The position numbers and the translations under genes are program-made. A stretch of 64,000 bases of DNA, from the sequence record LC680884.1. One strand, given 5' to 3'. The first letter of the stretch is position 1. Each line of letters opens with the position of its first letter. Positions 1 to 20,067 of the stretch are shown piece after piece. The notes beneath the pieces were generated by a model. The model worked only from the letters and a program-made list of their open reading frames with translations, did not search any database and was not told where the DNA came from.

Positions 1-30
1 TGAAATAATGGAGGAGGTCTTAGAACTATA

Positions 31-456: not shown

Positions 457-470
457 CGGAGGACAAAATA

Positions 471-1894: not shown

Positions 1895-1946
1895 TATATA
1901 TGTTCTTCTTTTACTCTCATGAGGGGAAAGAAAGGTAGAGGGAAAG

Positions 1947-2279: not shown

Positions 2280-2320
2280 TTTTCTATGTTCCAAAAGAGA
2301 GAAATCAGGAGGAAATTAAT

Positions 2321-4009: not shown

Positions 4010-4015
4010 TCTTAA

Positions 4016-4056
4016 ATTGATTAGACATTATAAAACATTTATAATGTCTAATCAAT
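4016..4056 (+). terminator. Stem-loop after the chaperonin gene
   Basis: 19-bp perfect inverted repeat with a 3-nt loop. Confidence 0.65.
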
Positions 4057-4080
4057 ATATTTTCTAAAGGAGGAAATATA

Positions 4081-4905
4081 GTGGCGATTGTAACGATGAA
4101 TCAATTATTACAAAATCCTTCTGGTAAATATTCAGCTTACTTTGCAAGAAGGGATATTACTATTCAAAACCTAAAAGATAGATTTTATGAAATGATGAAG
4201 CAACATAAAGATTTTAAATTAGAAATAATGAAAGATAAAGATATTTATTATTTTTATTTTAAAATACCATCAGAAACATATGAAAAATTATTTTATGATG
4301 TTGTATTACAATTTTCTCCAATAAACGATCAAGCTAACTCAGATTTTACATTCAATAACTATAGTGTAAGATTATTTAGCAATGCACCTAATTTTTTATT
4401 TACGTATGCCTATGTATATAATCAAGATGGAATTCTGATTGATTTCCTTAAGAAAAAAATATCTAATAAAGCTTTAAATGAACCTCCTAATACACGAAAT
4501 CCCATTCAATCTTATGGATTTGAAAAAAGTGTTTACTTTGCACTACTATATATTAAACACAGAAGATTTAATGTTAAATCTGTTATTAGTACTACTAGTA
4601 TTAAAAAATTCTCTAAGACTCTTTTATTAAAGGCAGTTGATTCAACTGACGAAAAATTAAAGCAATATAATAGGGTTAAGAACAATGAGATGACTAAGAA
4701 GAAATCTCAAAAAAGAGTTGCAAAGAAAGAGAAAAATAGTTATAATGGAGAAGTGAGAAAAACTTTGAAGGAAGACTCTCAGAAATCTAATAGTCGTCCT
4801 ACAACTAGAAAGTCTCTTAAGAAAAATCCTCAAGAAAGAAACAAACGTCCTAACATGAAAAGAGACATGAAGAAAAATATGAGTGTTAGAAAGAAGAAAA
4901 AGTAA
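4081..4905 (+). CDS. Hypothetical protein with long Lys/Arg-rich C-terminal tail
   Basis: GTG start after AAGGAGG; 274 aa; last ~75 aa highly basic. Confidence 0.8.
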   Translation: MAIVTMNQLLQNPSGKYSAYFARRDITIQNLKDRFYEMMKQHKDFKLEIMKDKDIYYFYFKIPSETYEKLFYDVVLQFSPINDQANSDFTFNNYSVRLFSNAPNFLFTYAYVYNQDGILIDFLKKKISNKALNEPPNTRNPIQSYGFEKSVYFALLYIKHRRFNVKSVISTTSIKKFSKTLLLKAVDSTDEKLKQYNRVKNNEMTKKKSQKRVAKKEKNSYNGEVRKTLKEDSQKSNSRPTTRKSLKKNPQERNKRPNMKRDMKKNMSVRKKKK

Positions 4906-4916
4906 TATAACACTTT

Positions 4917-4929
4917 AAATATATATTAT
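4917..4929 (+). promoter_or_regulatory. Putative early (virion RNAP) promoter AAATATATATTAT
   Basis: Exact 13-mer recurring in several intergenic regions; precedes the gp226-like gene. Confidence 0.7.
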
Positions 4930-4966
4930 AAAAAAGATTCTCACATCATGAAATAATATAGGAGGT

Positions 4967-6361
4967 ATGGACATTTTGGAGAATTATGTAAGCTTTGATG
5001 AACAAGCAAGAGACATTAATATTGCGTTTGATAAATTATTTGGGAGGGATGACATCTCTCACATGAATAATTTCTCAATTAATAAGAGATCATACTATAA
5101 CTGTTTAGACCAGATTAGTGATGATCTAAATTTAGTACTTAATAAATATAATGACTTAGCATATTCATTATTAGAAATTCGGTATAATATGGCTACAAAA
5201 GAAAATTATACTCATATGGAATTTTATAGTGACATTGAAAGATTATTTATTAAGAATGAGAAATTATTAAATGTCATCTCAGATATTGTAGAAGAAGAAT
5301 ATGATCTTGATCTCAACCAAGCAAGTAAAGGAAAGAAAATTAATATTGAACTTCAGGTAACAGATAACCTTAATAAGATTTATCTTAAGAGTTCAGTATT
5401 GATGAGAATTTTAATACCAATACTCTGTGACTTTAATTGTGATGATGATATTAACGAAGTTTTGGTTTATGATATTTTTAAAGAAGTCATTAAAAGTTTT
5501 GATGATGGTAAAAAGAATGCACTCAATAAATTATATAAGATTATCTACAGTCGAGTATTTGAAACTAAATATTCAGATGTAGTTATTTGGACTTACTTAA
5601 AGAATATGTCTACTGACTTAATGATCATTGTAAAAGATTATTTTAAAGTAATTATTAAGAAAATCTTCCCTAAATTAAAACATAATAGTTCTGTTATATC
5701 ATATCTTGATGTAGTTATTAAACAAAAACTAAAATACTTATTTACATTTAAATATCCAATTAGTTATAAACCTCTTAAAGCAGAAACAACTGATGATGAG
5801 GAGCTATCAGAACAAGAACGTATGGAAATTAACTTGCTTAGAAATGACCAAGGTAATTCCATAATTAACGAATGTAGTATTAAACAGGAAATTGCAAAAA
5901 TTAAAAAGAAATATAATGTAACTGATGAAGTAATGAAAGAATTTATTAATGGAAGAGAATTAAACTCCATTCAGATTTATTTAGTTAAGATTTATTATTC
6001 TAATAAGTTTAAAGTAAATTCTAATAAAAATGATATCTTTTATTTATTATATGGAATGACGAGAGAACTTGGGGAAATGAATTTTAGTATTATTCCAGAG
6101 ATTTTAAGTTGTGCTATTGCACCAAATGTTAGAAAAATGAATAATCGTAAAAAGCTTGTTGATAAAATTATTCATTCTGATAAATATTCTTATCTTCTTA
6201 AGAGTTATCTTCCTATTAAAAATATCTTGGACAAAAATAATGTTATCCTTCAGTTAATGACAATTAAAAATGCTAAGTTTATGAATAAAGAAAATAAAGA
6301 AGTAGATTTCTCTACGGATCATTTAGCAGAAGAAGTTCTTGATATGTTATTGTGTATCTAA
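4967..6361 (+). CDS. Promoter-specificity (sigma-like) subunit of non-virion RNA polymerase, AR9 gp226-like
   Basis: 464 aa, MDILENYVSFDEQARDINIAF...EEVLDMLLCI, recognised from memory as AR9 gp226. Gene order next to the chaperonin fits. Needs BLAST confirmation. Confidence 0.85.
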   Translation: MDILENYVSFDEQARDINIAFDKLFGRDDISHMNNFSINKRSYYNCLDQISDDLNLVLNKYNDLAYSLLEIRYNMATKENYTHMEFYSDIERLFIKNEKLLNVISDIVEEEYDLDLNQASKGKKINIELQVTDNLNKIYLKSSVLMRILIPILCDFNCDDDINEVLVYDIFKEVIKSFDDGKKNALNKLYKIIYSRVFETKYSDVVIWTYLKNMSTDLMIIVKDYFKVIIKKIFPKLKHNSSVISYLDVVIKQKLKYLFTFKYPISYKPLKAETTDDEELSEQERMEINLLRNDQGNSIINECSIKQEIAKIKKKYNVTDEVMKEFINGRELNSIQIYLVKIYYSNKFKVNSNKNDIFYLLYGMTRELGEMNFSIIPEILSCAIAPNVRKMNNRKKLVDKIIHSDKYSYLLKSYLPIKNILDKNNVILQLMTIKNAKFMNKENKEVDFSTDHLAEEVLDMLLCI

Positions 6362-6363
6362 TA

Positions 6364-6398
6364 AAAAGGACAATACCAACTAAAGGTATTGTCCTTTT
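6364..6398 (+). terminator. Intrinsic terminator
   Basis: AAAAGGACAATACC / GGTATTGTCCTTTT stem followed by T-rich sequence. Confidence 0.75.
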
Positions 6399-6436
6399 AA
6401 ATTTTTTATTTTGAAGATCTTTTAAAGAGATAATTT

Positions 6437-6448
6437 AACAGTTTTTTA
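6437..6448 (+). promoter_or_regulatory. AR9-type late promoter AACA-N6-TA
   Basis: AACA-GTTTTT-TA upstream of primase. Confidence 0.55.
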
Positions 6449-6471
6449 GTACTAAACTATGGGAGAAGGAT

Positions 6472-7512
6472 TTGATGAACAATAACCTCTTGTATTCACA
6501 TCTAAAATCTAAACTACGTGTTTGTGGCTTATCAGGAAAAAAAGATGAGATTTTTATTAGGTGTATTTTCTGTGGAGACAGTACTAAAGATCCAAATAGT
6601 GCTCACTTTTACATAATGAATAGAGCGCCATATAAATATTACTGTCAGAAGTGTCATTCTAGTGGAATTATAACATCAAATTTCCTAAGCAGACTTAAAA
6701 TTGCTGATTATAATTTAATAAGCCACATTAATGAGGCTAATATATCTTATAAAAAGAAATTATCATATAAATATGGTAGTGAAATTAATTATTTTAATAA
6801 TGATAAGATAATAAATTTCTATCCTAATCAGTATACAGAATTGGAGAATAAGAAAATAAGATACCTATCCGATAGATTAAAAATTGATTTTGTTGAGAGT
6901 GATCTAGAGAAGTATAAAATTGTCTTAAATCCAATTGATTTCTTCAAGAATAATAATATCGATATTACAAAGAGAATTAAAAATGATAAACAAAAGAATT
7001 TATTTAAAAAGGTACAAGAACATTCTATAGGTTTTCTAACGGCAGATAAGAATACTATCATCTGTAGAAGTCTTGATCCAAAAATTACTGGATTTCGTTA
7101 TCATAATTTTTCGTTGTTTCCTGATATGGTAGAATCAAAAAAGCTATATGCTTTAAAGAAAAAATTAGACTTGTCTGAATCAGAACATAAAATTATCATG
7201 ACTGAGGGAATCATAGATTTGATTGGGGTAAACAATCATATCTATAACAAAGACGACAAACCTTTATACGTATCTGGTAATGGAACATCCTTTTTACTTG
7301 TTTTAGATCACCTAGCATCATTATCACTCTTGAATGTGGATATTGAAATATATTCAGATAAAGATGTTACCTTAGATTTTTATAAGTATATTATTAAGAA
7401 TAATAGGCTTGCAAGATTTAATGGTCTTAATATCTTTTACAATAAGATAGTAAAAGATTATGGGGTAGAAAAATCTAAAATTGAATTAACAAAAGGAATA
7501 ACACTTCCTTAA
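6472..7512 (+). CDS. DNA primase (T4 gp61-like)
   Basis: Zn-binding CIFCGDS...HFYI...CQKC plus TOPRIM motifs IIMTEGIIDL and YSDKD. Confidence 0.8.
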   Translation: MMNNNLLYSHLKSKLRVCGLSGKKDEIFIRCIFCGDSTKDPNSAHFYIMNRAPYKYYCQKCHSSGIITSNFLSRLKIADYNLISHINEANISYKKKLSYKYGSEINYFNNDKIINFYPNQYTELENKKIRYLSDRLKIDFVESDLEKYKIVLNPIDFFKNNNIDITKRIKNDKQKNLFKKVQEHSIGFLTADKNTIICRSLDPKITGFRYHNFSLFPDMVESKKLYALKKKLDLSESEHKIIMTEGIIDLIGVNNHIYNKDDKPLYVSGNGTSFLLVLDHLASLSLLNVDIEIYSDKDVTLDFYKYIIKNNRLARFNGLNIFYNKIVKDYGVEKSKIELTKGITLP

Positions 7513-7525
7513 TAGGAGGAATTAT

Positions 7526-7945
7526 ATGTTAATCATATATGATACCAGAACTGGTAGTACCAGATCTTTTGTAAAGGATTGTGGTTTTACTAACGCTAAA
7601 CGTATAAGTAAGGATCTAATTGTAGAAGAGCCATTTGTATTAGTAACTTATACAACTACCTTAAGGATTGATGGAGTAAAACAAAACGGATTACCTCCAA
7701 CCTCAACTATGGAATTTCTAAAGCATAATGGTGAATACCTTGTAGGAGTTGCCGCAAGTGGTGATAGAAACTGGGGAAAAGAAAATTTTGCTAAAAGCGC
7801 TGATTATATATGTGAAAGGTATAATAACGCAAAGCTTATATGTAAATTCCAAAAACGAGGAACAGAGAGAGATAGAAGTGTATTTATAAAAGGAGTGGAA
7901 TTATTAGATGAAGGATTATCTCAAATACAACAACAGTATCACTAA
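7526..7945 (+). CDS. nrdI: Class Ib ribonucleotide reductase flavodoxin NrdI
   Basis: YDTRTGSTRSFV, GVAASGDRNWG, FAKSAD, KFQKRGT. Confidence 0.92.
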   Translation: MLIIYDTRTGSTRSFVKDCGFTNAKRISKDLIVEEPFVLVTYTTTLRIDGVKQNGLPPTSTMEFLKHNGEYLVGVAASGDRNWGKENFAKSADYICERYNNAKLICKFQKRGTERDRSVFIKGVELLDEGLSQIQQQYH

Positions 7946-10004
7946 AAAAGGTGACAATGGTTTTTGGCAGTTAGAAAATGACAAATTAGCTATTTCTTCT
8001 TTTGCAGAAGAAATTGATGAATATTCTATTAAGTTTCCAAATTTACTTGAACGTCTTAATTGGTTAATTGGAAATAACTATTACTATAATGTATTTCAAG
8101 ATTATAGTTTATCACAAATTGAAGAAGTTTATAAAGCGATCAATAAAGTACCATTCAGTTTCCAATCATTTATGGCTATCTCCAAATTTTATAGTACTTA
8201 TGCCTTGAAAACTACAGATAAAAAACATTACTTAGAAACTTACCAAGATAGGATTGCTATTGTTGCTCTATATCTATTTGATGGGGATCTAGAAAAAGCA
8301 ATTCAAGCCGCTGTTGCAATGATAGAACAAAGAGTTCAACCTGCTACTCCTACTTTCCTTAATGCTGGTAAAGCAAGAAGAGGAGAACTTGTATCTTGTT
8401 TCTTAGATGAAGTTGATGATACTCTAAACTCAATTAGTCATATTGAAGGACAATCAAAATATCTCTCTAAAATTGGTGGAGGGGTTTCAACAAATGTTTC
8501 TAAATTAAGAATGCTTGGAGATCCAGTAAACGGTGAAGAAAATGCCGCTAAAGGTGTTATTCCTGTAATGAAGTTATTGGAACAAAGTTTCTCTTATGCT
8601 GATCAGATGGGTCAGCGCAAAGGTTCAGGAGCCGTTTATCTTAATATTTTTCATGGAGATATTATTCATTTCCTAAATACTAAAAAAATCAATGCTGACG
8701 ATAGCATTCGTATGAAAACACTTTCAACTGGAATTATTGTTCCTGATAAATTTATTCAATTGCTAGAATCAGGAGAAGAAGAGTTCTATACATTCTCTCC
8801 TTATAGTGTCGAAAAAGAATATGGAATTCCTTTAGATGAGATGGATCTAGATGTAATGTATGATGAATTAGTTAATAATCCAAATATCAAAAAATTTGTA
8901 TGTGAATTATCACCAATGAAACTAATGAATCAAATTGCAATGACTCAATTAGAATCAGGATACCCTTATCTGTTCTTCAAAACAAATGCTAATAAAGAAC
9001 ATGCTTTAAAAGCAATTGGTGAAATTAAATTCTCTAACCTTTGCACTGAAATTATGCAGTTAAGTTCAGTATCAGTAATTAATGATTATGGAGAAGAAGA
9101 TGAATTAGGATTGGGAATCAGTTGTAACCTTGCATCATTAAATATCGTTAATGTAATGGAGACTAAAAAATTTAAAGATTCTGTTGATATTGCAATGGAT
9201 ATTTTAACATCTGTAACAGATAAGAGTGATATCAAAAACGCACCATCTATAAGAAAAGCAAATGCACTATTCCATTCAGTTGGTTTAGGTGCAATGAACT
9301 TACATGGCTTCCTTGCTAAAAATAGTATTTCATATGAAAGTGCTGTAGCAAGAGACTTTGCTAATGTATTCTTTGCAATTATGAATTTCCATAGTATTAG
9401 ACGTAGTATGGAAACTGCTATTGAGAAAAACAAGAAATTCCATCGTTTTGAAGATTCTGAATATGCTAATGGTAATTATTTCAAGCGTTATATTGAAAAT
9501 GATTATACACCTAGAAGTCAAAAAGTAAAAGAATTATTTGAGGGAATCTTTGTTCCAACAAAAGAAGATTGGGCTGAATTAGCAGAACAAGTAAAAGAAA
9601 ATGGTTTATACCATGCTTATAGACTTGCTATTGCACCTACACAATCAATTAGCTATGTACAGAACTCAACTCAATCCATTATGCCTGTTGTGAGTCGAAT
9701 TGAAAATAGAACTTACCATGATTCTACAACATACTATCCAATGCCATATTTAGATGGTAGAACTCAATGGTCTTACAAATCAGCATATGATATGGATCAA
9801 AATAAAATTATTGACATGGTTGCAGTAATCCAACAACATATTGATCAGGGTATTTCCACTACTTTATTTGTTAATAGCGATATCCCTACAGACCAATTAG
9901 TTGGTCATATGTATTATGCCAATAAACGTGGTTTAAAGAGTCTTTACTATGTACGTAATAGAAGTAAATCAGGAGATGACATCTGCGAATCTTGTGCAGT
10001 TTGA
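7908..10004 (+). CDS. nrdE: Ribonucleotide reductase class Ib alpha subunit
   Basis: QPATPTFLNAG, SCF, FSNLCTEI, AIAPTQSIS and KSLYYVR motifs; uninterrupted. Confidence 0.97.
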   Translation: MKDYLKYNNSITKKGDNGFWQLENDKLAISSFAEEIDEYSIKFPNLLERLNWLIGNNYYYNVFQDYSLSQIEEVYKAINKVPFSFQSFMAISKFYSTYALKTTDKKHYLETYQDRIAIVALYLFDGDLEKAIQAAVAMIEQRVQPATPTFLNAGKARRGELVSCFLDEVDDTLNSISHIEGQSKYLSKIGGGVSTNVSKLRMLGDPVNGEENAAKGVIPVMKLLEQSFSYADQMGQRKGSGAVYLNIFHGDIIHFLNTKKINADDSIRMKTLSTGIIVPDKFIQLLESGEEEFYTFSPYSVEKEYGIPLDEMDLDVMYDELVNNPNIKKFVCELSPMKLMNQIAMTQLESGYPYLFFKTNANKEHALKAIGEIKFSNLCTEIMQLSSVSVINDYGEEDELGLGISCNLASLNIVNVMETKKFKDSVDIAMDILTSVTDKSDIKNAPSIRKANALFHSVGLGAMNLHGFLAKNSISYESAVARDFANVFFAIMNFHSIRRSMETAIEKNKKFHRFEDSEYANGNYFKRYIENDYTPRSQKVKELFEGIFVPTKEDWAELAEQVKENGLYHAYRLAIAPTQSISYVQNSTQSIMPVVSRIENRTYHDSTTYYPMPYLDGRTQWSYKSAYDMDQNKIIDMVAVIQQHIDQGISTTLFVNSDIPTDQLVGHMYYANKRGLKSLYYVRNRSKSGDDICESCAV

Positions 10005-10030
10005 TTTAAAAGAGGAGAGGACTAGATAAA

Positions 10031-11080
10031 ATGACAACAGAGAGTAAAATTGTACCCATCGTTCATAAGGCGGTTAACTGGAACCGCCTTACTGATGAAT
10101 ATACTATTGATTTCTGGGATATTAATACTTCCCAATTTTGGTTAGAAAAAGAGATTGATTTAACTGGAGATATTGTTACTTGGAATAAAGTACTTAGTAA
10201 GGATGAACAAGAAGCATACTACAAAGTACTTGTTGGTTTAACAAAATTGGATACTGAACAAGGAAATGCAGGAATGCCATTAATTTCTCTTCATATTAAA
10301 GATGAACAAAAGAGTGCCGTTATTGCTTTTAGTGGTGCAATGGAACATGTACATGCTAAGTCGTATTCAGCTATTTTCTCAACACTTTGTTCTATGAGTC
10401 TAATTGATGAGATTTTTAAATGGGGAGAAGAACAAAAGAACCTTCAGTATAAAGCCGAAAAAATTGTTAAATATTATGACGCTATCTTTACTAAGGATAT
10501 TACTGATGAGATGTTATACAAAGCAATGGTAGCCAGTGTAATGTTAGAATCATTCTTATTCTATTCTGGATTCTTCTATCCTTTATACCTAGCTGGACAA
10601 GGCAAAATGGTAGCCAGTGGTGAAATTATTAACTTAATTATCCGTGATGAGTCAGTTCATGGTCAATATATGGGATTATTAGCTCAAGAGTTATTTGAAA
10701 AATTTGATATTAATAAACAGCAAGAATTAGTTCAATGGGCAAATGAACTATTAATGGATCTTTATGAAAATGAATTAGAATATACTGAAGAGATCTATTC
10801 TAAAATAGGATTAGTCGATGAAGTAAATGCATTCTTACGCTATAATGCTAATAATGCTTTTGATAACTTGGGTTTTAATCATTTATTTGATGATGAAGAT
10901 ATTAATCCAGTTGTAGAAAATGGACTTAATACAACTACTAAAAACCATGATTTCTTCTCAGTAAAAGGAAATGGTTATACTAAAGCACTAAATGTAACTC
11001 CTATTACAAAAGAAACATTTAAAATTGATCGCTTAGATGTAGACTTAATGTCTGAACTTAATGAACTCTCTGAAAGTTAA
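10031..11080 (+). CDS. nrdF: Ribonucleotide reductase class Ib beta subunit
   Basis: VNWN, EHVHAKSYS, LESFLFYSGF, IIRDESVHG, NHDFFSVKGNGY. Confidence 0.97.
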   Translation: MTTESKIVPIVHKAVNWNRLTDEYTIDFWDINTSQFWLEKEIDLTGDIVTWNKVLSKDEQEAYYKVLVGLTKLDTEQGNAGMPLISLHIKDEQKSAVIAFSGAMEHVHAKSYSAIFSTLCSMSLIDEIFKWGEEQKNLQYKAEKIVKYYDAIFTKDITDEMLYKAMVASVMLESFLFYSGFFYPLYLAGQGKMVASGEIINLIIRDESVHGQYMGLLAQELFEKFDINKQQELVQWANELLMDLYENELEYTEEIYSKIGLVDEVNAFLRYNANNAFDNLGFNHLFDDEDINPVVENGLNTTTKNHDFFSVKGNGYTKALNVTPITKETFKIDRLDVDLMSELNELSES

Positions 11081-11085
11081 TTAAA

Positions 11086-11117
11086 AAGGAAAACCAGAAT
11101 AATATCTGGTTTTCCTT
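11086..11117 (+). terminator. Intrinsic terminator after nrdF
   Basis: AAGGAAAACCAGA / TCTGGTTTTCCTT stem. Confidence 0.7.
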
Positions 11118-11137
11118 ATGTATTTTAAAGAATTAAG

Positions 11138-11149
11138 AACAAACAAGTA
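11138..11149 (+). promoter_or_regulatory. AR9-type late promoter AACA-N6-TA
   Basis: AACA-AACAAG-TA upstream of dCMP deaminase. Confidence 0.55.
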
Positions 11150-11172
11150 TATTTTATTATGGAGGAAATAAA

Positions 11173-11703
11173 ATGACAAACAAATGGGATTTAATGTATA
11201 TGGACATAGCAAAAAGAGTTGCAATTGAATCTAAATGTGCTGCTAAACAGGTTGGCTGTATTATTGAAAAAGATACTAATATTCTAGCAGTAGGTATAAA
11301 TGGAACTGCTTCTGGAAAAGAAAATTGTTGTGATAAATTTATGAAAAGAGATGGAAAATGGTATAAAAAACATTCCACTTTAGGTAAAGGGATGAAAAAT
11401 ATATTTGATCCTTGGGGATGGGAATTATGTGAAGATCAAGAAGAACATCATAAGTGGTCTTTGATTCATGAAATTCATGCTGAGATGAATGCCATTGCAA
11501 AAGCGCATAAGAATGGTGTTTCAATTGAAGGAGCAACAGCTTATATTACATATTCACCTTGTTTTAATTGTGCTAAACAATTAATAACACATGGAATTAA
11601 ACATATTGTATTTGATAAAGAATATGATGGCTTTAATGAAACACTGAAACTATTGAAGAATCATGATGTAGAAGTAATTAACATCAATAATAAAGGAGAA
11701 TAA
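11173..11703 (+). CDS. dCMP deaminase
   Basis: HAEMNAI and SPCFNCAK zinc deaminase motifs. Confidence 0.92.
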   Translation: MTNKWDLMYMDIAKRVAIESKCAAKQVGCIIEKDTNILAVGINGTASGKENCCDKFMKRDGKWYKKHSTLGKGMKNIFDPWGWELCEDQEEHHKWSLIHEIHAEMNAIAKAHKNGVSIEGATAYITYSPCFNCAKQLITHGIKHIVFDKEYDGFNETLKLLKNHDVEVININNKGE

Positions 11704-11705
11704 AA

Positions 11706-12839
11706 ATGTTATTATTAGAAAAAATTCTTCATTCCAAGAAATTAAGCTATGACACTTTAATGCCTTTAGTCAAACCATATATTAATAATAAAACAATTAT
11801 AACTGGTACTGATAGAGAATATAATACTGTTAATATTTTTATTGATTTTTGGGATATAGTTAAGTCATTATACAATCCACAAACTCTAGAAACAATGAAT
11901 TCATTAAAACAGAGAGAAAGATTTATGATTGCTTCAGAAGTTATTAATATTATTGGACATTATAGACATTTCTTTTATTCCAGATTAAAAATGTATACTA
12001 ACTTTGTCTTCTATTATTCTGATAAGAGGGATACAAGATTAACTAATATTGATAAAAACTATAGAAGTTCTTTTTATGAAAAAAGATTAGATGATAAAAA
12101 TCAGACTTTTGGTTTATTTAATAATATGGTTAAGAAAAATGTTCATATTATTAAATTATTTTGTGAATATGTACCACATGCCTACTTTATCAAAACAGAT
12201 GAAATGGATCCAAGATTAGTACCGCATTTATTCTTATCTGAAAACTCAAGACTTAAACAAAATATTATTAATAAGAATGATATGAATATAATTATTTCAA
12301 ATGAAAAAATTCATTATCAAGATTTAAACTTACAAGACAGAATTCTTCAATTAGAACTTAGAGGAAAAGAAAAATCAAGATTTGTGGCATCAGAAGATAT
12401 TATTGATATCCTCCTAGAAAAAAGTAAAAAGGATTATTATTTCTCTATTCTCCCAGATATGTATTCATTATTGGTTTCTCTTACAGGATATAAAGACTAT
12501 GATATCAGTAGTATTAAGAAAATGGGGAATATTAAGGCTCTTAATTTTATTCAAAAATGTATTGATAATAATATATTAAAGAATATTGAATATAATAATA
12601 CAGATCTATTGAATGGTTTAAGAGATGAATTAGGTGAGGAAAATTTAAAAGAGTTATATAAGAATATGCAACTATTAAATAACAATCTTTATAATTTTAG
12701 TAACAAAGATATAATCAATATTGAATCACAATTATTCGATCGTATTGATGCAGAATCAGTTAAATTTGTAAATAGTAAATATTTTGACAGATATCCAATC
12801 TTATTGGAGTATGTTTTTGAAGGGGAAAAGTATGAATAA
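11706..12839 (+). CDS. Divergent 5'-3' exonuclease/RNase H (FEN/PIN-like) protein
   Basis: N-terminal IFIDFWD strand and helix-turn-helix-like DYDISSIKKMGNIKAL; acidic catalytic pattern incomplete. Confidence 0.4.
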   Translation: MLLLEKILHSKKLSYDTLMPLVKPYINNKTIITGTDREYNTVNIFIDFWDIVKSLYNPQTLETMNSLKQRERFMIASEVINIIGHYRHFFYSRLKMYTNFVFYYSDKRDTRLTNIDKNYRSSFYEKRLDDKNQTFGLFNNMVKKNVHIIKLFCEYVPHAYFIKTDEMDPRLVPHLFLSENSRLKQNIINKNDMNIIISNEKIHYQDLNLQDRILQLELRGKEKSRFVASEDIIDILLEKSKKDYYFSILPDMYSLLVSLTGYKDYDISSIKKMGNIKALNFIQKCIDNNILKNIEYNNTDLLNGLRDELGEENLKELYKNMQLLNNNLYNFSNKDIINIESQLFDRIDAESVKFVNSKYFDRYPILLEYVFEGEKYE

Positions 12840-13014
12840 TAATAGTATTATGAAATATATTGTAATTCGTTTTATTACAATTCTGATTTTAATGTTAATA
12901 TTTCTTCATTTATTTCATTTTTCTAATATTAAAAAAGAGAGAGATAAATTAAGAGAAGAAAATCATAGTTTACATTCACTATGTGATAAAGATTGTAAAT
13001 GTTTAAAAAGATAG
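12832..13014 (+). CDS. Small membrane protein (60 aa)
   Basis: ATG 12832 after GAAGGGGA; one hydrophobic helix, then a coiled coil and a Cys-rich end. Confidence 0.6.
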   Translation: MNNNSIMKYIVIRFITILILMLIFLHLFHFSNIKKERDKLREENHSLHSLCDKDCKCLKR

Positions 13015-13030
13015 CGTTTGCTATCTTTTT
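13005..13030 (+). terminator. Intrinsic terminator
   Basis: AAAAAGATAGC-GTTT-GCTATCTTTTT with a long T tract. Confidence 0.8.
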
Positions 13031-13052
13031 TTTTTATAAGGAGGTAATTATA

Positions 13053-14243
13053 ATGGATGCTTCTTATTTAATAGAAGGATTTGTTGCCATTGACGGAATT
13101 GATAATCCAATAGTATTAGACAGTATGTTTAGGAGCATAGAAATAATTAATGATTATGATAATAATGTATTTCCTATTTTAAGATTAAATGTAGAATTAG
13201 ATTTTGAAAGTTATTATCTAATTCAGAAAAATGATTCATGTAAATTCTCAATAACTATTAAAAAATACAAACATGAAAATTTGGAGAGTAATGATACAAC
13301 TATCTTTACGTATTATATGAAAAATAAAATTTTTATACCAGTTGATAAGGATATTTCTCCAATTAATATGCCTGAAGGTTTAAATAGTGTTACTGATCAG
13401 ATTCCTAGTTTAAGAACTACTTTTTTATTAATGAGTGAAGAAGATTTATCGAATAATAAAAGACTAGTTAACACAGTTTTAAAAGACTCTGATATTGAGA
13501 GTACAATTTTATATCTTGCACAAAAATTTCCATCAAAACCAATTATATTTGAAAAACCAGATAATCAAATTATATATGATCAAATTATACTACCTCCTAA
13601 TAATATTATTAGATCAATGAAATATCTTGATACTGTTTATGGAATATATAATTATGGACTAAGAATATTCCTAGATTTTAATGCATATTATATTATTAAT
13701 AAACATGATAATTCTAATTTACCTGTATTAGAAGGTAAATATAAAAATACTCATATAAAGGTTGTTAGTGATACTGCTGAAGGAGATTCATTATTCTATA
13801 ATGATACAGTAACAGAATCTGGAGATTTCTACTCAGCTAAAGTTCATATCTCTAATATAAAATTTATAAACTATTCTGATTCTAGAAAAGAATTCCTTGG
13901 TACTCATAATATTATTATTTCTCAAAGTAACAGCGATATTGTGAGAAATGATTATGGTACTAATGAAATTAAAACAAGAGTTTATTATAATAGGTATAAT
14001 AATAAGCATAAAGAAAAGGAAATTGTAACAAATTCTAAAAAAGGAATTTTTTTGACATGCACTTTAGACGCTATTGATATAGATGCTATATCATGTAATA
14101 ACCAATTTTATTTTAATTTTGCCGCTAATAACTACAGTAACTATAGTGGGGAATATCATATTCTAAAATCTAGTTCTATATTTAATGTAGGAAGTAATGG
14201 ATATTCAGACTTACAGGCTAAATTATACTTTAAAAAGAAATAA
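13053..14243 (+). CDS. Putative baseplate hub-like virion protein
   Basis: Start moved to ATG 13053 after AAGGAGG; beta-rich; hub assignment is weak inference. Confidence 0.4.
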   Translation: MDASYLIEGFVAIDGIDNPIVLDSMFRSIEIINDYDNNVFPILRLNVELDFESYYLIQKNDSCKFSITIKKYKHENLESNDTTIFTYYMKNKIFIPVDKDISPINMPEGLNSVTDQIPSLRTTFLLMSEEDLSNNKRLVNTVLKDSDIESTILYLAQKFPSKPIIFEKPDNQIIYDQIILPPNNIIRSMKYLDTVYGIYNYGLRIFLDFNAYYIINKHDNSNLPVLEGKYKNTHIKVVSDTAEGDSLFYNDTVTESGDFYSAKVHISNIKFINYSDSRKEFLGTHNIIISQSNSDIVRNDYGTNEIKTRVYYNRYNNKHKEKEIVTNSKKGIFLTCTLDAIDIDAISCNNQFYFNFAANNYSNYSGEYHILKSSSIFNVGSNGYSDLQAKLYFKKK

Positions 14244-14248
14244 TGACA

Positions 14249-15139
14249 TTAGTCATTATTTCTTCTTTTTTTAACTTCAGCTACTGTCATCCTACATACT
14301 GTAAATGAATCAGTATATAATTGATTCAAGAGACTAAGCATTCTAGAATAACATTCAATAACAGTTGAAACACACATTCTTGAGATTTCAATATAACCAT
14401 TAACAGCTAATTTTCCATCTCTTGTAGAAGTATCAACATTAAATTTACTTATAAAATTATTTTTACTAGTTCTAATAATTGAATCTGTAGTCTTATACAT
14501 TTTACTAAATTCAGCTACTAAACTATCATAACCTTTAAGTAAGAATAATTTACTTTTTTCATATAAATCTTTATTTGGTGTTACTTCTTCTTTTTCAACA
14601 ATCATTTTATTGATTTCTTTTTTAGCATTACTTAATTTCATACTTAATTCTTTCTGAATGGTATCCTTACTAATATCCTCTGGTCTAATTTTTACCTTCA
14701 TAATATCATCAGAAACAATCTTAACTGATCTAACAGCATTCATTACGGTATCAAATCTTCGATGATCAAATAATAGTGGACTTACTTTAATCTTTTTATC
14801 TGAAAAATACATATTTGTCTTTTCAAATTCTTGAAGATATTTTCTATTTTGATCCATAAATTTATCTGCTAATTTCATATGGATAATAATTTTATTTACT
14901 ACATCTTTAATTCTAGATATAAAAGCAATCCAAATATCTATTATGGCTTGCAACAATTTATTTGCAACTTCTTTTATCCTCATTTTATAGTCAGTAGGAT
15001 TTGGATTGTGATCAATAGGGTCATCCTCATTTAGAAATAAACTAATTTCCTCAGATAAAAGTTCATGATAGATATTATTAAAATTCATTTCTGCTTCTAA
15101 TATATCAGTTGTCATTATTGAGTCATTTAAAAATTCCAT
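14249..15139 (-). CDS. Putative internal head protein, paralog of 15207-16325 and 62126-62935
   Basis: ILEAEMNFNN...LNE N-terminus followed by the amphipathic helix IIDIWIAFISRIKD. Confidence 0.55.
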   Translation of the reverse strand: MEFLNDSIMTTDILEAEMNFNNIYHELLSEEISLFLNEDDPIDHNPNPTDYKMRIKEVANKLLQAIIDIWIAFISRIKDVVNKIIIHMKLADKFMDQNRKYLQEFEKTNMYFSDKKIKVSPLLFDHRRFDTVMNAVRSVKIVSDDIMKVKIRPEDISKDTIQKELSMKLSNAKKEINKMIVEKEEVTPNKDLYEKSKLFLLKGYDSLVAEFSKMYKTTDSIIRTSKNNFISKFNVDTSTRDGKLAVNGYIEISRMCVSTVIECYSRMLSLLNQLYTDSFTVCRMTVAEVKKRRNND

Positions 15140-15168
15140 TAATAATTCCCCCTTATACTTTATTAAAA

Positions 15169-15198
15169 AGGATACGATTCATATTAGAATCGTATCCT
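15169..15198 (-). terminator. Intrinsic terminator
   Basis: 12-bp stem AGGATACGATTC / GAATCGTATCCT with a T tract on the minus strand. Confidence 0.75.
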
Positions 15199-15206
15199 CA
15201 TTTATA

Positions 15207-16325
15207 TTATTCAATTTCTTCTAGATCTTCTAAATTGAGATCCTCTAGATCTTCTAGTGCAATCTCTTCTTCTTTTGTTTCTTCATCTTCTTCAAAATCT
15301 TCAAGAGTAAGAATTGGTTGTTCTTCATCAAGTTCAACATCTTCACTTACTGCTAGTTCGTTTCCACGTTTTCCTTTAGCCGCATTTTTAGAAGCCTTTT
15401 TATCAGCTTTCATTCCTGCACTTCCACCAGAAGTAGCCGCAGAAACAATACGCATAGAATCTCCATAACACTCAACTTCAAGTTTAACAAATACATTTAG
15501 TACTTTGTTAAGAACTGATTGAGCTGCTTTTGCAGTTTGAACAGCCGCACTTTGTTTTTGTTGATCTTGAGGATCTTTTGCATTTAAGCCAGCGGTAGCC
15601 GCTTTACGTCCTTCTTGGATGATTCCTTGAGATTGTTTTCCAAGTTGATTAACAATACCTAGAATTTGTTTAGCAGATTTGACATCATTAGCCGCAGATG
15701 AAAGAACTTGTGGACTAACTTTAACTTCAACTTTTTCATTTCCACGAGCTTTAGCAACTACACCTTTATCAATAGCAGAGAAGGATTCAAAACCTAATCC
15801 TTTAGCAATTTCATCAGCTGAAACAGCTTTTCCACTCTTAGCGGCTTGATTAATAGCTCCTACAAGACTGCCACCTAAACGATTAGTTGGGAATTCTTTA
15901 GCAATTCCAAGCATTCCTTTAACTTTCCAATTGTAGATAGAAACAGTTTTATCACCTTGATAACGAGCTAATTTTTCCTTACGAGAAGCTAAGAATTTTT
16001 CCCCATTAGTAAACTGTACTTGAAGACGAGATACTAGATTCCGAATAACTTGTACAAATTTTTTCCATAATTCTTGGAAGAAAGCAATTGCTTTCTTGAA
16101 GAATTCTGAACGACTTTTAGTTGCCTGTTCTTCATCTTCTTTCATGATTGCTTGAAATTCTTCTTTGACGATTTCAGTATGAAGGTTATTCCAGCTCATT
16201 TCAGCCTCAAGAGTAAGAGCAATAAGACCAGTTTTATCTTCAATAACTGCTTCAGTTACAACTTCTTTTTCCTCTTCTTTTGTTTCATCCAACTCAACAT
16301 CTTCTAATAGAAACAGATTTTTCAT
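15207..16325 (-). CDS. Putative abundant internal head protein with acidic termini
   Basis: Own late promoter; acidic xLE-rich ends; LEAEMSWNN motif and FFQELWKKFVQVI helix. Confidence 0.6.
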   Translation of the reverse strand: MKNLFLLEDVELDETKEEEKEVVTEAVIEDKTGLIALTLEAEMSWNNLHTEIVKEEFQAIMKEDEEQATKSRSEFFKKAIAFFQELWKKFVQVIRNLVSRLQVQFTNGEKFLASRKEKLARYQGDKTVSIYNWKVKGMLGIAKEFPTNRLGGSLVGAINQAAKSGKAVSADEIAKGLGFESFSAIDKGVVAKARGNEKVEVKVSPQVLSSAANDVKSAKQILGIVNQLGKQSQGIIQEGRKAATAGLNAKDPQDQQKQSAAVQTAKAAQSVLNKVLNVFVKLEVECYGDSMRIVSAATSGGSAGMKADKKASKNAAKGKRGNELAVSEDVELDEEQPILTLEDFEEDEETKEEEIALEDLEDLNLEDLEEIE

Positions 16326-16369
16326 TATTTATTTTCTCCCTTCGGAATTAGGTTATTATTTAATTTTAC

Positions 16370-16381
16370 TAATTATATGTT
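16370..16381 (-). promoter_or_regulatory. AR9-type late promoter AACA-N6-TA
   Basis: AACA-TATAAT-TAG on the minus strand. Confidence 0.65.
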
Positions 16382-16398
16382 TATTTGTATTTATAATT

Positions 16399-17433
16399 TT
16401 AATATAAATCTAAACTAGTGCTATTATTAGATGGGCTGTTATCAATAGCAATAATTTTATTTGATTCTTCAATTTGACTATTTGCTCTGTCATTTGCTAC
16501 GTTTTGGTCAACTCGAATTCGATCAGATAATTTTCCAAGAGCTTGAGCAATTTTTTCTTGACGTTCTCTTACTTTTTTAGCATCATGTTCAAGAGTTGAT
16601 GAATTCATTTCAACAAAATCTTTTAAATGTGTAAGATACTGAGATAATTTAACTCTTGAATTGAAATACAAGAAAATAATACTTCTAATAAAGGTCAAAG
16701 AAAATCCAATTAAACCAAGAATTGCAATCCACTTAGTAACTCCACCAAGATCAGATAGGCGCTTCAATACATCTTTACCAATGTTGATTAAAGTATTTTC
16801 AGCCAAGTTATGTGATTCTTTAAATAACTTAACCAGCTGACCTTTTCGTTCCAATTGATTAAATACTGAGATTGATTTAATGTGATTGTTATTAAAGATT
16901 TCTTTGGAATCTCTATAAGTGACATTATACAAATTTAGATTATCTTTTGTTAGCTGGACAGTCTCTGAAACCAAATAGGAAGTTCCTTGAATAATAGCAA
17001 TAACGATAGAATTATACAGGTAACGAGTAATTGAATCATTTAACATAAATCCACGCTGAAAATCTTTTTTATATTTAATAAGAGTATTTAAAGTGAATTC
17101 AAGCTGACTCACAGCTTTGACAATTTGAGCGTCATCACTTTGTCCACTAACTCCTTTTTTAATAAAGGAAATAGCATTAGAAATAGTATTGTAATTAGCT
17201 AGGCGAGTGATATCACCCTTTGACTTATCAACTATAGCGAAATCAACACTAAGTGCTTTTGATTTAATGTCACTAAATAAGTTTGTGACAACACGGTCTG
17301 TAACATCAGATTTAATATCTTCAGCTAAACTTTGAATTTTGTACTTACTCCATTCGCTATCTTCACGAATAAGAATTCCACCTAAAAATTCATCATTTTG
17401 TTCTAATAGAGTGGTTTTCTTTTCAAAAAACAT
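16399..17433 (-). CDS. Putative virion structural protein
   Basis: 344 aa in a late operon; C-terminal hydrophobic helix and coiled coil. Confidence 0.6.
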   Translation of the reverse strand: MFFEKKTTLLEQNDEFLGGILIREDSEWSKYKIQSLAEDIKSDVTDRVVTNLFSDIKSKALSVDFAIVDKSKGDITRLANYNTISNAISFIKKGVSGQSDDAQIVKAVSQLEFTLNTLIKYKKDFQRGFMLNDSITRYLYNSIVIAIIQGTSYLVSETVQLTKDNLNLYNVTYRDSKEIFNNNHIKSISVFNQLERKGQLVKLFKESHNLAENTLINIGKDVLKRLSDLGGVTKWIAILGLIGFSLTFIRSIIFLYFNSRVKLSQYLTHLKDFVEMNSSTLEHDAKKVRERQEKIAQALGKLSDRIRVDQNVANDRANSQIEESNKIIAIDNSPSNNSTSLDLY

Positions 17434-17448
17434 ATATACTCACCTCTT

Positions 17449-18711
17449 TTATTTTAAAAGACTATAAATATCTTTTATATCAATATTTTTTTGTTTTGAG
17501 AAACCTTCTAATGATCTGAAAGAATAATGACTGAAATCGCTGGTATCTTCATTAAAGATATATACCGTTTCAATACTTTCATCAACAATGATAAAAGTCA
17601 TTAAGAAGAAATTCTTCATAATCTTTTTAACGAATGAAGGTTTTGCAAGAAGATCAATACCATGTTTATGACGAATATTGTCTACATTTTCTTTACTGAT
17701 TACCATTGTAGAGGTAGGAATAGGAGCTTTCCCTAGTTTTCTTCCTTTACTTAATGCAAATAAAGAAGGACGAGCATGAGCTACTTTTGAGATTGTTTGT
17801 AGTTTTCTCCACCAGAAGCTATTTTTATCATTTGATTTAACAGCAGTTCTTTTAATTTCATCAATAGAAAATAAGAAATCTTTAAAGAATTTAATCTCCC
17901 CTGATGTCCATTGAATCATACGCATGATTGGTGTTTTAGTAATTACAGCATTTGGGAGAAAATACTCGATATCTTGAGAATCAAGAAGGTGAGCAACACA
18001 TTTAACTCCAAATGAAATGGTCTTATGAACTGTTCCATTATTAGTTTCATAATCAATATCCACAGAAACATTAGTTGGAGTTAATTCATTTGCTTTTTTA
18101 ATTTCTGTATTATCAATTTTTGGTTTTGCAGATAATTCTTTTTCAACTTTTTTGTTATTTGAATCATCTTTTTTATCTTCTAATAAATTTTTATATTCTT
18201 TACTAACAGTAGAATCATTTAATACTTGAAGGTTTAAATCATCACTAAAACTTTCAAGTAATTTTTTATTAGCATCTCTTAAATCATTTTCAGTAATTAC
18301 AGACTCTGAAAATCTTCTTTCTAGTTCATCTGTACTTTTAGATAAATGAGAATCAAGATTTGCATCATGACTAATATTTTGATGGTATCCTTTTAAATAT
18401 GATGCAGTATTTTCAAAACCGTCTGCACCATCATTTTGAATAAGTAGCTTTAACATATTTACATATTCATGTTCTAATGCACGATTTACAAGCTGTACTG
18501 AATGAGAAGTAAGATTATCAGAAAATAAAACAGGATAGTGAGCAATTAAATCTTTTGCTCTATATTTAATACTACCTCTTCTTGCAGTAGCTGTAGCGCC
18601 AAGAATTTCAGCCGCAGTCTCCCAATCTTTAGTTCTCGGTGATTTATCTTTATTTAAATCTTTTCCGAAACCGAAAGCAGAGATAAAATTCATTAGTGTA
18701 TTAATATCCAT
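17449..18711 (-). CDS. Putative virion structural protein
   Basis: 420 aa, first gene after the late promoter at 18764-18775. Confidence 0.6.
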   Translation of the reverse strand: MDINTLMNFISAFGFGKDLNKDKSPRTKDWETAAEILGATATARRGSIKYRAKDLIAHYPVLFSDNLTSHSVQLVNRALEHEYVNMLKLLIQNDGADGFENTASYLKGYHQNISHDANLDSHLSKSTDELERRFSESVITENDLRDANKKLLESFSDDLNLQVLNDSTVSKEYKNLLEDKKDDSNNKKVEKELSAKPKIDNTEIKKANELTPTNVSVDIDYETNNGTVHKTISFGVKCVAHLLDSQDIEYFLPNAVITKTPIMRMIQWTSGEIKFFKDFLFSIDEIKRTAVKSNDKNSFWWRKLQTISKVAHARPSLFALSKGRKLGKAPIPTSTMVISKENVDNIRHKHGIDLLAKPSFVKKIMKNFFLMTFIIVDESIETVYIFNEDTSDFSHYSFRSLEGFSKQKNIDIKDIYSLLK

Positions 18712-18763
18712 TCGTTTCTCAACCTTTCCTTTCTATCATTATTAAATGATATTTATTTAGCAT

Positions 18764-18775
18764 TAATTATTTGTT
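18764..18775 (-). promoter_or_regulatory. AR9-type late promoter AACA-N6-TA
   Basis: AACA-AATAAT-TA on the minus strand. Confidence 0.6.
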
Positions 18776-18779
18776 AACA

Positions 18780-19055
18780 AAGGAGGAAAAGAAAAAAATA
18801 AAAAAATATAACCACCTATTTGCCATTAGCGAACTTAATCGCTAATGGCGTTATAGTATATAAACCTAGTTTTAGGGTTCCCAATTTATTGTAATCCAAT
18901 GATTGACAATACTGTTCTTAATGCCTTAAACATGAGTTTATCTTCCTCCATCTTTATATGTTGAAGAAGCGGAAGCGTCATCAAGGTGGTTGTATGCTTC
19001 CTATTTAGAGATTTATTAAGGTCTATATACTCTGATATTTACTTACTTCAACATT
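18780..19055 (-). ncRNA. Putative structured small transcript containing a 15-aa ORF
   Basis: Early 13-mer directly upstream; 9-bp closing stem 19046-19054/18958-18966; GGAAGC/GCUUCC stem; 11-bp hairpin 18822-18849; U-rich tail. Confidence 0.5.
18886..18933 (-). CDS. 15-aa amphipathic peptide MFKALRTVLSIIGLQ
   Basis: GGAGGA SD 10 nt upstream of ATG; below the ORF-track cutoff. Confidence 0.55.
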   Translation of the reverse strand: MFKALRTVLSIIGLQ

Positions 19056-19058
19056 CTT

Positions 19059-19071
19059 ATAATATATATTT
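19059..19071 (-). promoter_or_regulatory. Putative early promoter AAATATATATTAT
   Basis: Exact 13-mer on the minus strand. Confidence 0.65.
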
Positions 19072-19096
19072 GAAAAATGAGTTTTCTTTTACTTAG

Positions 19097-19108
19097 AACA
19101 ATTAAATA
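19097..19108 (+). promoter_or_regulatory. AR9-type late promoter AACA-N6-TA
   Basis: AACA-ATTAAA-TA before the baseplate operon. Confidence 0.65.
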
Positions 19109-19134
19109 AAGATTCGCTTTTAGGAGGTTTATAA

Positions 19135-20067
19135 ATGTCTGAGTTCAACTTATATCCTCATATTGATATAATCAAAGAATATGATGTATATAGAAGAGGA
19201 GATCCAAAAGATCATGATGTATTAGTAAAAGGTATACCATACATTTTTATTACTACACCAAAATTAAATCTAGATAAACTTAACACTCGAAGAGATAGTT
19301 TTCTAATGTATTTAGAAACATTAGAACCTGATCTTTTTAATGCACTAACTACTAATGGAAAAACAGTTAGTCCATTTATTAAAATTTTAACAAATGCATT
19401 TAGAGGAATGGATGGTAAGGATTTAGCGGCAAGGACAATTGATGTTGGAGAAACATTCTATGGATATAAACAAACTTTACCAATTTCACTTGTAGATAGT
19501 CTAGTTGGTGATACTACTACTGTTAAATTTGAGGAATATAAAAGTCTACCCATTATTAAGTTACATAAGGCATGGGTAGAATATACTGAAAATGTAAGAC
19601 GTGGTACATTTTCACCTTCAAAAGATGCTATAAAAAAGAGATATTTAGACTATGTGAGTTCAATTTACTACTTTCTTTTAGATTTTGATGGTGAGACTAT
19701 TTTATATTTCTCTAAATATACTGGTGCAGTTCCTATTTCAGTTCCCTATGCTAACCTAGCAACTGATGGCAAGGATCATGATATTCCAGAAATATCAGTA
19801 GAATATAGTTACTCGTTCAAAGAAGATCTAGATCCAGCAATCCTTATGGACTTTAATAAAGTAGCAACATTAGATTCTGAAGCGTTAAGATATTCAACTG
19901 AAGGTTCTAATAAAGGTGTTATTCCCTATACAACGAATGATTTATTACCTTATAACTTTACTGAATCTAATGTGAAAGCAACTAAAGTTCTTGTTGTTAA
20001 AACTGATCCTTATGAAAATGATTCTCTACATCCAAAGACATCATTTAAACTTAAATTCTTTAAATAG
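19135..20067 (+). CDS. Putative tail-tube-fold/baseplate structural protein
   Basis: Late operon, directly upstream of the wedge gene; beta-rich C-terminal half. Confidence 0.45.
   Translation: MSEFNLYPHIDIIKEYDVYRRGDPKDHDVLVKGIPYIFITTPKLNLDKLNTRRDSFLMYLETLEPDLFNALTTNGKTVSPFIKILTNAFRGMDGKDLAARTIDVGETFYGYKQTLPISLVDSLVGDTTTVKFEEYKSLPIIKLHKAWVEYTENVRRGTFSPSKDAIKKRYLDYVSSIYYFLLDFDGETILYFSKYTGAVPISVPYANLATDGKDHDIPEISVEYSYSFKEDLDPAILMDFNKVATLDSEALRYSTEGSNKGVIPYTTNDLLPYNFTESNVKATKVLVVKTDPYENDSLHPKTSFKLKFFK

Follow-up and report, generated by a model that had tools for sequence, protein, structure and literature searches.

We identified an unannotated gene in the genome of jumbo phage PBS1, which encodes a structured, peptide-coding early RNA about 250 nt long; the gene is both real and new. 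The window analysed here is the whole stretch of 64,000 nt taken from PBS1 record LC680884, and its coordinates are those of the record. PBS1 and AR9 serve as models for the uracil-DNA jumbo phages that infect Bacillus subtilis; a multisubunit RNA polymerase that is injected into the cell drives their early programme. To this PBS1/AR9 early programme the present analysis adds an early gene that has escaped annotation. Its architecture is rare, three mutually crossing long-range helices placed around a 15-codon frame and derived from natural covariation alone, and should the peptide prove active, it would rank with the smallest functional proteins of phages. The strings and coordinates quoted in an earlier sequence-only reading of this DNA were all found on the minus strand, where that reading had put them.

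The gene lies in a gap of 423 nt (18712-19134) between g214 and g213, in which no gene is annotated in any of the four records examined (PBS1, AR9, Goe21 and Internexus); among these four, AR9 record KU878088 alone marks a promoter in the gap. Both genes that flank the early RNA are late virion genes, and each has its own late promoter:

17449-18711, minus strand: g214, minor virion protein.
18764-18775, minus strand: late promoter of g214 with its late transcription start (18764), a neighbour outside the RNA (Table S3, TSS AR9 182012).
19096-19107, plus strand: late promoter of g213 with its transcription start (19106/19107), a neighbour outside the RNA (Table S3, TSS AR9 181669/181670).
19135-20067, plus strand, divergent from g214: g213, whose homologues match PF23971, a tail-tube family.

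A 1.1-kb query around the element showed 100% identity to Bacillus phages AR9 and PBS1, 99.5-99.9% to Goe21 and Internexus, and 66% to the B. pumilus phage BpSp, and the element itself is identical base for base in five isolates (AR9, both PBS1 records, Internexus and Goe21). Searching with the g214 protein returned about 19 homologues with 50-79% identity; AR9/PBS1, BpSp and 14 further syntenic loci on the contigs of these homologues make up the 16 distinct copies used throughout this study, which come from PBS1-like jumbo phages and metagenome contigs and are always sited between a g213-like and a g214-like gene. The AACA-N6-TA late motif of g214 is kept in 16/16 copies, as is the motif of the g213 late promoter, which is located upstream of the early promoter and diverges from it. 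All sampled relatives with a g214 homologue above about 54% identity carry the element; it is absent from more distant ones (g214 at most 50% identical), such as L006, in which a 50-codon ORF occupies the site instead. A g213-based search of IMG/VR recovered only distant relatives (45% identity), all without the element, and a covariance-model search of about 40 distant g214 loci found no homologue, while the same kind of search found a single copy, and no second one, in the whole PBS1 genome. No g214 relatives were recovered by scanning 185,579 bacterial species genomes with a g214 profile, and in two DNA-pattern scans of IMG/VR based on the AR9/BpSp alignment, the matches inspected beyond AR9 were chance matches in coding sequence. 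Scanning against Rfam 15 gave no family at its gathering threshold and only chance matches below it, the best being CyaR_RyeE on the opposite strand with 27.5 bits versus a gathering score of 47. No description of the element was found in a literature search.

Transcription of the gene is defined by the following features:

19059-19071, minus strand: early (virion RNA polymerase) promoter 13-mer, annotated as "early promoter" at the equivalent position in AR9 KU878088.
19052, minus strand: transcription start G, +1 (Lavysh 2017, Table S2, TSS AR9 181724, PMC5312081).
18800-19052, minus strand: whole RNA, about 250 nt, with its probable 3' end placed from the covariance model and the length of the 16 copies.

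The published AR9 early consensus consists of a 13-mer followed by 6 nt and a G (PMC5312081). The element fits this consensus with an exact 13-mer at 19071-19059 and the G at 19052, and the promoter is exact or one base off in 16/16 relatives, each of which has a G start. In the dRNA-seq data, TSS AR9 181724 was classed as primary, and its TEX enrichment of 3.87 was the top value among early TSSs (PMC5312081). The element is an early transcription unit of AR9, transcribed by the virion RNA polymerase, and the 13-mer that the sequence-only reading had taken for an early promoter is the annotated AR9 early promoter, with G19052 as its published primary start. The authors of the AR9 study assigned this TSS to g214 with a "340-nt UTR" (Table S2), which is the longest among the listed early promoters, the next one being 214 nt (PMC5312081). 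According to their Table S4, g214 reached 0.69, 20.7 and 1427 FPKM at 5, 20 and 40 min, and genes behind early promoters had roughly 10 to several thousand FPKM at 5 min (PMC5312081). Because g214 is silent at 5 min, the early RNA most likely stops short of it, and what was published as the "340-nt 5' UTR of g214" is better regarded as a transcription unit of its own. A discrete transcript at the start of infection had been expected from the DNA, and the published TSS together with the g214 value at 5 min agrees with it.

The fold of the RNA was described by five helices, whose strands and loops, together with the end of the unit, are listed here:

19046-19052, minus strand: 5' strand of P1, GUUGAAG, which includes the first transcribed base and pairs with 18966-18960.
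19020-19031, minus strand: 5' arm of the LR helix, 12 nt, inside the loop closed by P1, pairing with 18866-18855.
18971-19001, minus strand: P2 hairpin with a purine-rich 5' arm (19001-18996), a 19-nt loop and a pyrimidine-rich 3' arm (18976-18971).
18984-18991, minus strand: P2 loop motif AACCACCU, partner of the 3' tail at 18817-18810.
18960-18966, minus strand: 3' strand of P1, CUUCAAC, which pairs with 19052-19046.
18855-18866, minus strand: 3' arm of the LR helix, downstream of the ORF, placed by covariation and duplex energy.
18822-18849, minus strand: T hairpin, an 11-bp stem (18849-39 with 18832-22) and a conserved 6-nt loop.
18810-18817, minus strand: 3' tail motif AGGUGGUU, which follows the T hairpin and precedes the U tract, covarying with the P2 loop.
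18792-18806, minus strand: U-rich tract, likely the 3' end region, with a run of at least 6 U in 16/16 copies.

The AR9 RNA folds with -62.3 kcal/mol (z = -4.23 versus dinucleotide shuffles). When the five-helix structure with its pseudoknot brackets was tested on a model-guided alignment of the 16 sequences, standard pairs were found in 93% of structure cells versus 36-42% with the partners slid by 1-3 columns, and compensatory changes on both sides were found at 31/44 pairs; the observed value was reached by 0/500 shuffles on four of five measures and by 9/500 on the fifth. An unbiased scan of all column pairs ranked T, LR, loop-tail and P1 as its top four, and RNAalifold on a plain MAFFT alignment independently picked the loop-tail helix and T.

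P1 has compensatory change at 6/7 pairs, is paired in 94% of cells and is predicted in 16/16 single-sequence folds of the 5' domain; in AR9 it is extended by 4 bp (19044-19041 with 18970-18967). The sequence-only reading had drawn this closing stem as 19054-19046 with 18966-18958, of which 19054-19053 lie upstream of the TSS; since transcription starts at 19052, the closing stem of the RNA has 7 bp, not 9. Its GGAAGC/GCUUCC stem capped by a CCACC loop is present as P2 and carries compensatory changes across the 16 relatives (6/6 pairs). P2 is predicted in 15/16 single-sequence folds with arm sequences that differ widely among genomes, and only 67% of its cells are paired because bulged variants are misaligned. 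The pairing of the leader loop with the 3' tail, likewise proposed from the DNA, covaries among the 16 relatives (97% of cells paired, compensatory change at 5/8 pairs), and the proposed 11-bp hairpin is borne out by T, with 99% of cells paired and compensatory change at 8/11 pairs. The LR helix (19031-20 with 18866-55) and the pseudoknot topology had not been noticed in that reading; LR is the strongest long-range helix, with 97% of cells paired and compensatory change at 6/12 pairs, and one of its pairs is G-U in 10 sequences, which fits an RNA of the minus strand. Duplex energies in 16/16 genomes ranged from -8.7 to -18.9 kcal/mol for P1, from -13.5 to -21.9 for LR and from -12.0 to -15.1 for loop-tail.

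Along the sequence, the helices P1, LR and loop-tail are mutually crossing, and the fold is therefore pseudoknotted. From the alignment, LR and loop-tail would form an H-type pseudoknot that carries the Shine-Dalgarno (SD) sequence and the ORF in its connecting loop, with P1 as a further crossing; the three crossing long-range helices may coexist, form in sequence or form between molecules. Two extra pairings were examined, one of 19020-19015 with the T loop (18839-18834) and one of the P2 3' arm with the SD, which gave 88-94% of cells pairable; neither was adopted, as base composition alone gives 87%.

Covariance model R1 matches 18798-19052 with 216 bits, and the unit is 245-260 nt long and ends in a U run in 16/16 copies, the run beginning 0-8 nt past the tail motif. 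The RNA probably ends at the U tract, just past the tail motif. A terminator scan of 18300-19600 gave 0 terminator-like sites, and it misses the U tract because the tract is at least 15 nt from the T stem; in AR9 the U run starts 15 nt after this stem, and the covarying tail motif lies in between. In the 12 canonical terminators found elsewhere in 1-20000, the U run comes directly after the stem. A canonical intrinsic terminator was rejected here, the GC-rich hairpin not being directly followed by the U tract. It is possible that the loop-tail helix plays a role in 3'-end formation, with a spacing that misfits some members.

Within the RNA lies a very short reading frame:

18944-18949, minus strand: SD sequence GGAGGA; 16/16 copies have a GGAGG or GGGGG core, located 7-12 nt upstream of the start codon.
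18886-18933, minus strand: micro-ORF of 15 codons and a stop, open in 16/16 copies.

The micro-ORF has 14-16 codons and starts with ATG, TTG or GTG in 16/16 copies, and stops occur in the +1 frame in 16/16 copies and in the +2 frame in 9/16. Entropy at the three codon positions is 1.36, 0.77 and 1.42, so the second position is the constrained one, as expected for a hydrophobic product, and the summed pN/pS is 0.60. Comparison of the 16 copies shows, on the evidence of substitution patterns, that the micro-ORF evolves as coding sequence and is conserved as a reading frame; the micro-peptide that had been read from the DNA is borne out by the frame, open throughout, and by these coding-type substitutions. 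Residue 3 is K or R in 16/16 copies, residue 4 is L in 14/16, residue 5 is aliphatic in 16/16, and residues 2 and 6 are basic in 10/16 and 9/16; no copy has a charged residue at positions 7-14, and residue 13 is S, G, N or C in 16/16. The peptide consists of a basic N-terminus followed by an uncharged hydrophobic run of 8-12 residues, with a net charge of +1 to +4. It had been described as amphipathic: its hydrophobic and basic character stands, while amphipathicity is no family trait, the helical hydrophobic moment exceeding that of shuffles in some members only and not in most. A second ORF, from an AUG 2-12 nt past the stop in 14/16 copies, was rejected; it is absent in AR9 and in phage L053, its frame varies relative to the LR 3' arm, its length ranges over 10-38 codons, and it has no SD.

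According to our preferred explanation, which we hold to have about an even chance of being right, the element is a long-lived mRNA with locked ends, and its fold controls how stable it is and how it is translated into a membrane-acting peptide. It would be an independent early gene of PBS1/AR9-like jumbo phages, with a tightly folded RNA as product that at the same time serves as mRNA for a peptide of 14-16 residues. The virion RNA polymerase, which is injected, starts the RNA at G19052; both RNA ends would be locked, the first nucleotide in P1 and the last structured nucleotides on the P2 loop, leaving the SD-ORF segment as a loop of about 115 nt that is presumably tethered on both sides by the LR/loop-tail pseudoknot. 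The fold most likely prolongs the life of the RNA in a setting where the mRNA of the cell is being destroyed, and probably also sets the amount and the timing of ORF translation. The P2 3' arm and the P1 3' strand could each pair with the SD when the 5' domain is unformed; the SD would become free as the 5' domain folds, and could be closed again by refolding after synthesis of the 3' tail. The hydrophobic run appears too short to span a bilayer, and the peptide would most likely act at the membrane surface or on a membrane protein early in infection. The explanation draws on the promoter, TSS and g214 expression data, the sixteen syntenic copies with their covariation, the folding energy, the ORF statistics and the identity of the element in five isolates; moreover, AR9 and phage L053 share 94% identity in the RNA outside the ORF, with only 79% in g214. 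Several observations count against it. The SD partners differ between genomes and the predicted SD accessibility is similar to that of ordinary PBS1 genes (both detailed below), the three long-range helices cross each other, the scaffold is more conserved than the peptide, which also fits a mainly RNA-level function, and 14-16 residues are very short for a membrane-active product, the amphipathicity of which is not conserved.

A possible but rather unlikely reading is that of a self-gated toxin mRNA of the hok/AapA kind, with a predicted membrane-damaging peptide that would serve host takeover or superinfection exclusion. The full-length RNA would be inert, the loop-tail helix would strain or open P2 and so free its anti-SD arm, and the nascent or 3'-trimmed RNA would be translated. 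This is consistent with the covariation in the 5'-3' long-range pairing and with the hydrophobic, basic peptide. The P2 3' arm is pyrimidine-rich and SD-complementary in 16/16 copies, and the pairing has 9 cells changed on both sides versus 3.8 expected; its cells are pairable at 90-94%, versus 87% in shuffles, so that the P2-3'-arm/SD pairing is suggestive only and largely explained by base composition. The minimum-energy folds of AR9 and L053 place the SD on CUUCUUC, the partner that the sequence-only reading had given it, but only in these two; the folds of the remaining genomes use the P2 3' arm or the spacer downstream of the stop codon instead, and there is no consistent partner. A second proposed partner, UUCCUCC (18788-18782), does not occur in relatives and is located past the first U tract. 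Unconstrained SD accessibility was 0.09-0.78, within the range of a control set of 83 ordinary PBS1 genes of the same SD type (median 0.40), for 14% of which the value does not exceed that of AR9. When the supported helices, or LR alone, were imposed in three constrained states, the accessibility of the SD or the start codon did not change consistently. Conserved SD sequestration is thus not supported, with no convincing covariation, no fixed partner and no stronger effect than in the 83 ordinary genes. An antisense RNA, which the sequence-only reading proposed to look for, also found no support: no conserved early or late motif is present on the opposite strand inside the element in the 16 copies, and the published tables list no antisense TSS inside it (PMC5312081). 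A toxin mRNA of this kind is further disfavoured by the lack of an antitoxin RNA and by the size of the peptide (14-16 aa, with an uncharged run of 8-12 residues).

We also consider it unlikely, and a little more so, that the element is mainly a non-coding structured RNA, e.g., one that serves a host or phage protein or RNA as decoy or scaffold, in which the short ORF would merely load ribosomes or remodel the fold and the peptide itself would be functionless. The most conserved segments are LR (76-80% mean pairwise identity), T (77%) and the tail (72%), compared with 51% for the micro-ORF; the neighbouring virion genes, too, are less tightly conserved than the RNA scaffold. Conservation extends to the T loop and to the unpaired stretch that follows the LR 5' arm, and the pseudoknot is far more elaborate than mRNA stabilisation requires. 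Between AR9 and phage L053, nucleotide identity is 99.6% in g213, 98.8% in the region upstream of the TSS, 94% in the 5' part of the RNA, 58% in the ORF, 94% in the 3' part of the RNA, 64% in the spacer to g214 and 79% in g214, and a mosaic junction marks the 3' border of the element; within its conserved scaffold, the ORF forms a divergent island. However, the second codon position of the ORF is strongly constrained (entropy 0.77, compared with 1.36 and 1.42), 16/16 copies have a basic residue at position 3, positions 7-14 are uncharged and the length is fixed at 14-16 codons. Also against this reading, the element belongs to no Rfam family and no trans target is known.

The same island fits another proposal, which we think improbable, that the micro-ORF is a swappable specificity cassette in an invariant scaffold. 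It would encode a short basic-hydrophobic peptide, produced as soon as infection begins, for kin or self-recognition between PBS1-like phages, the synthesis of which is timed by the double-pseudoknot RNA; as an example within the same improbable proposal, it could be a communication or exclusion peptide that bears on the carrier-state decision. The 48-nt ORF with 58% identity between AR9 and L053 lies within flanks of 94-99%, in genome segments that are nearly identical apart from it, and the ORF differences are both synonymous and non-synonymous. Precursors of short hydrophobic signalling peptides resemble the peptide in general shape.

It is very improbable that the element is a 5' leader or attenuator of g214, in which a leader peptide and a terminator tune early read-through into the virion-gene operon. 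The order of promoter, short ORF, hairpin, U tract and gene would suit such a role, and Table S2 gives the TSS to g214 (PMC5312081). Against this, g214 is at background at 5 min (0.69 FPKM), and its own late promoter lies between the U tract and the start codon in 16/16 copies; on these two grounds the attenuator reading was rejected. In addition, about 20 nt or more separate the stop codon from the helix that follows, and the scan of all column pairs revealed no antiterminator alternative to T with covariation. An element acting at the DNA level, such as a replication origin or protein-binding inverted repeats, could be imagined from inverted repeats in an intergenic region between divergent genes, but is scarcely credible, since G-U is tolerated on the minus strand only (e.g., the LR pair), the helices fall exactly within the mapped transcript and a coding frame is embedded among them.

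The element was also compared with known systems. Like the type I toxin mRNAs (hok of R1, aapA1 of Helicobacter pylori, and bsrG/txpA of Bacillus subtilis prophages), it is a short RNA that codes for a tiny hydrophobic peptide, shows conserved interaction of its 3' tail with an element near the 5' end, carries a strong SD near pyrimidine-rich anti-SD-like tracts, and is located on a mobile element. Unlike them, it has no antisense or overlapping antitoxin RNA, occurs in a lytic/pseudolysogenic jumbo phage where it is transcribed by a virion RNA polymerase, and shows no sequence or Rfam relationship. Known type I toxins have about 18-60 aa, and we know of none as short as 14-16 aa. Since it has no antitoxin and its peptide is too short, the element falls outside the type I toxin-antitoxin family as it is defined, although it may work in a similar way; of the features of such systems, the 5'-3' long-range pairing is strongly supported here, and an antitoxin RNA, a peptide of toxin size and SD sequestration are not.

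The element resembles leader-peptide attenuators in having a promoter, a 14-16-codon ORF with an SD, a hairpin and a U tract upstream of a gene, and differs from them in that the downstream gene has its own promoter and is silent early, no covarying antiterminator is present, and the ORF is not adjacent to the hairpin. With the dual-function RNAs of Firmicutes, such as RNAIII/hld of Staphylococcus and SR1/SR1P and SR7/SR7P of Bacillus, it shares a length of a few hundred nt, a C-rich loop and an embedded small ORF; unlike in these RNAs, the C-rich loop has its covarying partner in the 3' tail of the same RNA, and the ORF is far shorter. The pRNA of phi29 is, like the element, a phage-encoded early structured RNA, and its loop-loop complementarity covaries among related phages. 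The two share no sequence similarity, and the element has no Rfam match; the pRNA is non-coding and its covarying loops pair between molecules into a ring, whereas the element described here carries an ORF.

The P2 helix of the early minus-strand RNA, which lies in the gap between the divergent genes g213 and g214, is asymmetric between its two strands. In AR9 (19001-18996) and at the equivalent positions of 15 relatives, the 5' arm consists of purines only, except for its last base, while the 3' arm consists of pyrimidines only in every genome. The arm sequences covary freely despite this asymmetry, which exceeds what a simple stem needs; it may reflect an SD mimic with its anti-SD, or pairing with the U tract. 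Two conserved segments outside P2, and the region that follows the 15-codon micro-ORF, are listed below.

19020-19015, minus strand: conserved single-stranded CUUAAU, directly after the 5' arm of the LR helix
18839-18834, minus strand: conserved AUUAAG in the loop of hairpin T, complementary to CUUAAU
18885-18867, minus strand: region of the AUGA motif (A5 columns about 183-187)

Judged from complementarity, CUUAAU and the T-loop AUUAAG could be a candidate tertiary contact; among the relatives, the pairing carries a compensatory change in one and a mismatch in four. The AUGA motif is found 2-12 nt past the micro-ORF stop in 14 of the 16 relatives and is missing from AR9 and L053; it does not open a conserved second ORF. 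In the folds of L057, L058, and L061, AUGA contributes to the pairing of the start-codon region with the post-stop spacer.

The L053 phage is represented by a 187,680-bp ENA metagenome contig, of which positions 2094-3778 were compared with window positions 17449-19134. Its identity to AR9 is 99.6% across g213 and drops to 79% across g214. The drop coincides with the RNA element's 3' edge and has the look of a recombination junction. The 48-nt micro-ORF forms a distinct island with 58% identity. A more distant relative, L006 (a 216 kb IMG/VR contig; site 3493-3708, minus strand), shares 36% identity with g214 and 45% with g213, and the gap between its two divergent genes contains, in place of the structured RNA, an ORF of 50 codons preceded by an SD of its own.

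Upstream of the RNA, the early 13-mer has G as its third base in three metagenomic loci (L055, L056, and L060) and C as its sixth base in the B. pumilus phage BpSp, and all four retain the spacer of 6 nt and the start at G; they represent natural variation in the promoter of the virion RNAP. In 11 of the 16 genomes, the plus strand carries a late-promoter-like AACA-N6-TA motif (19053-19064) that overlaps the early promoter. Since there is no published TSS at this motif, it probably arises incidentally from the early consensus together with the P1 helix sequence.

Finally, g213 (19135-20067, plus strand) is annotated only as "virion protein" or "hypothetical protein". Its homologues match PF23971 (Phage_TTP_15), and the g213 product is therefore likely a tail-tube-type protein.
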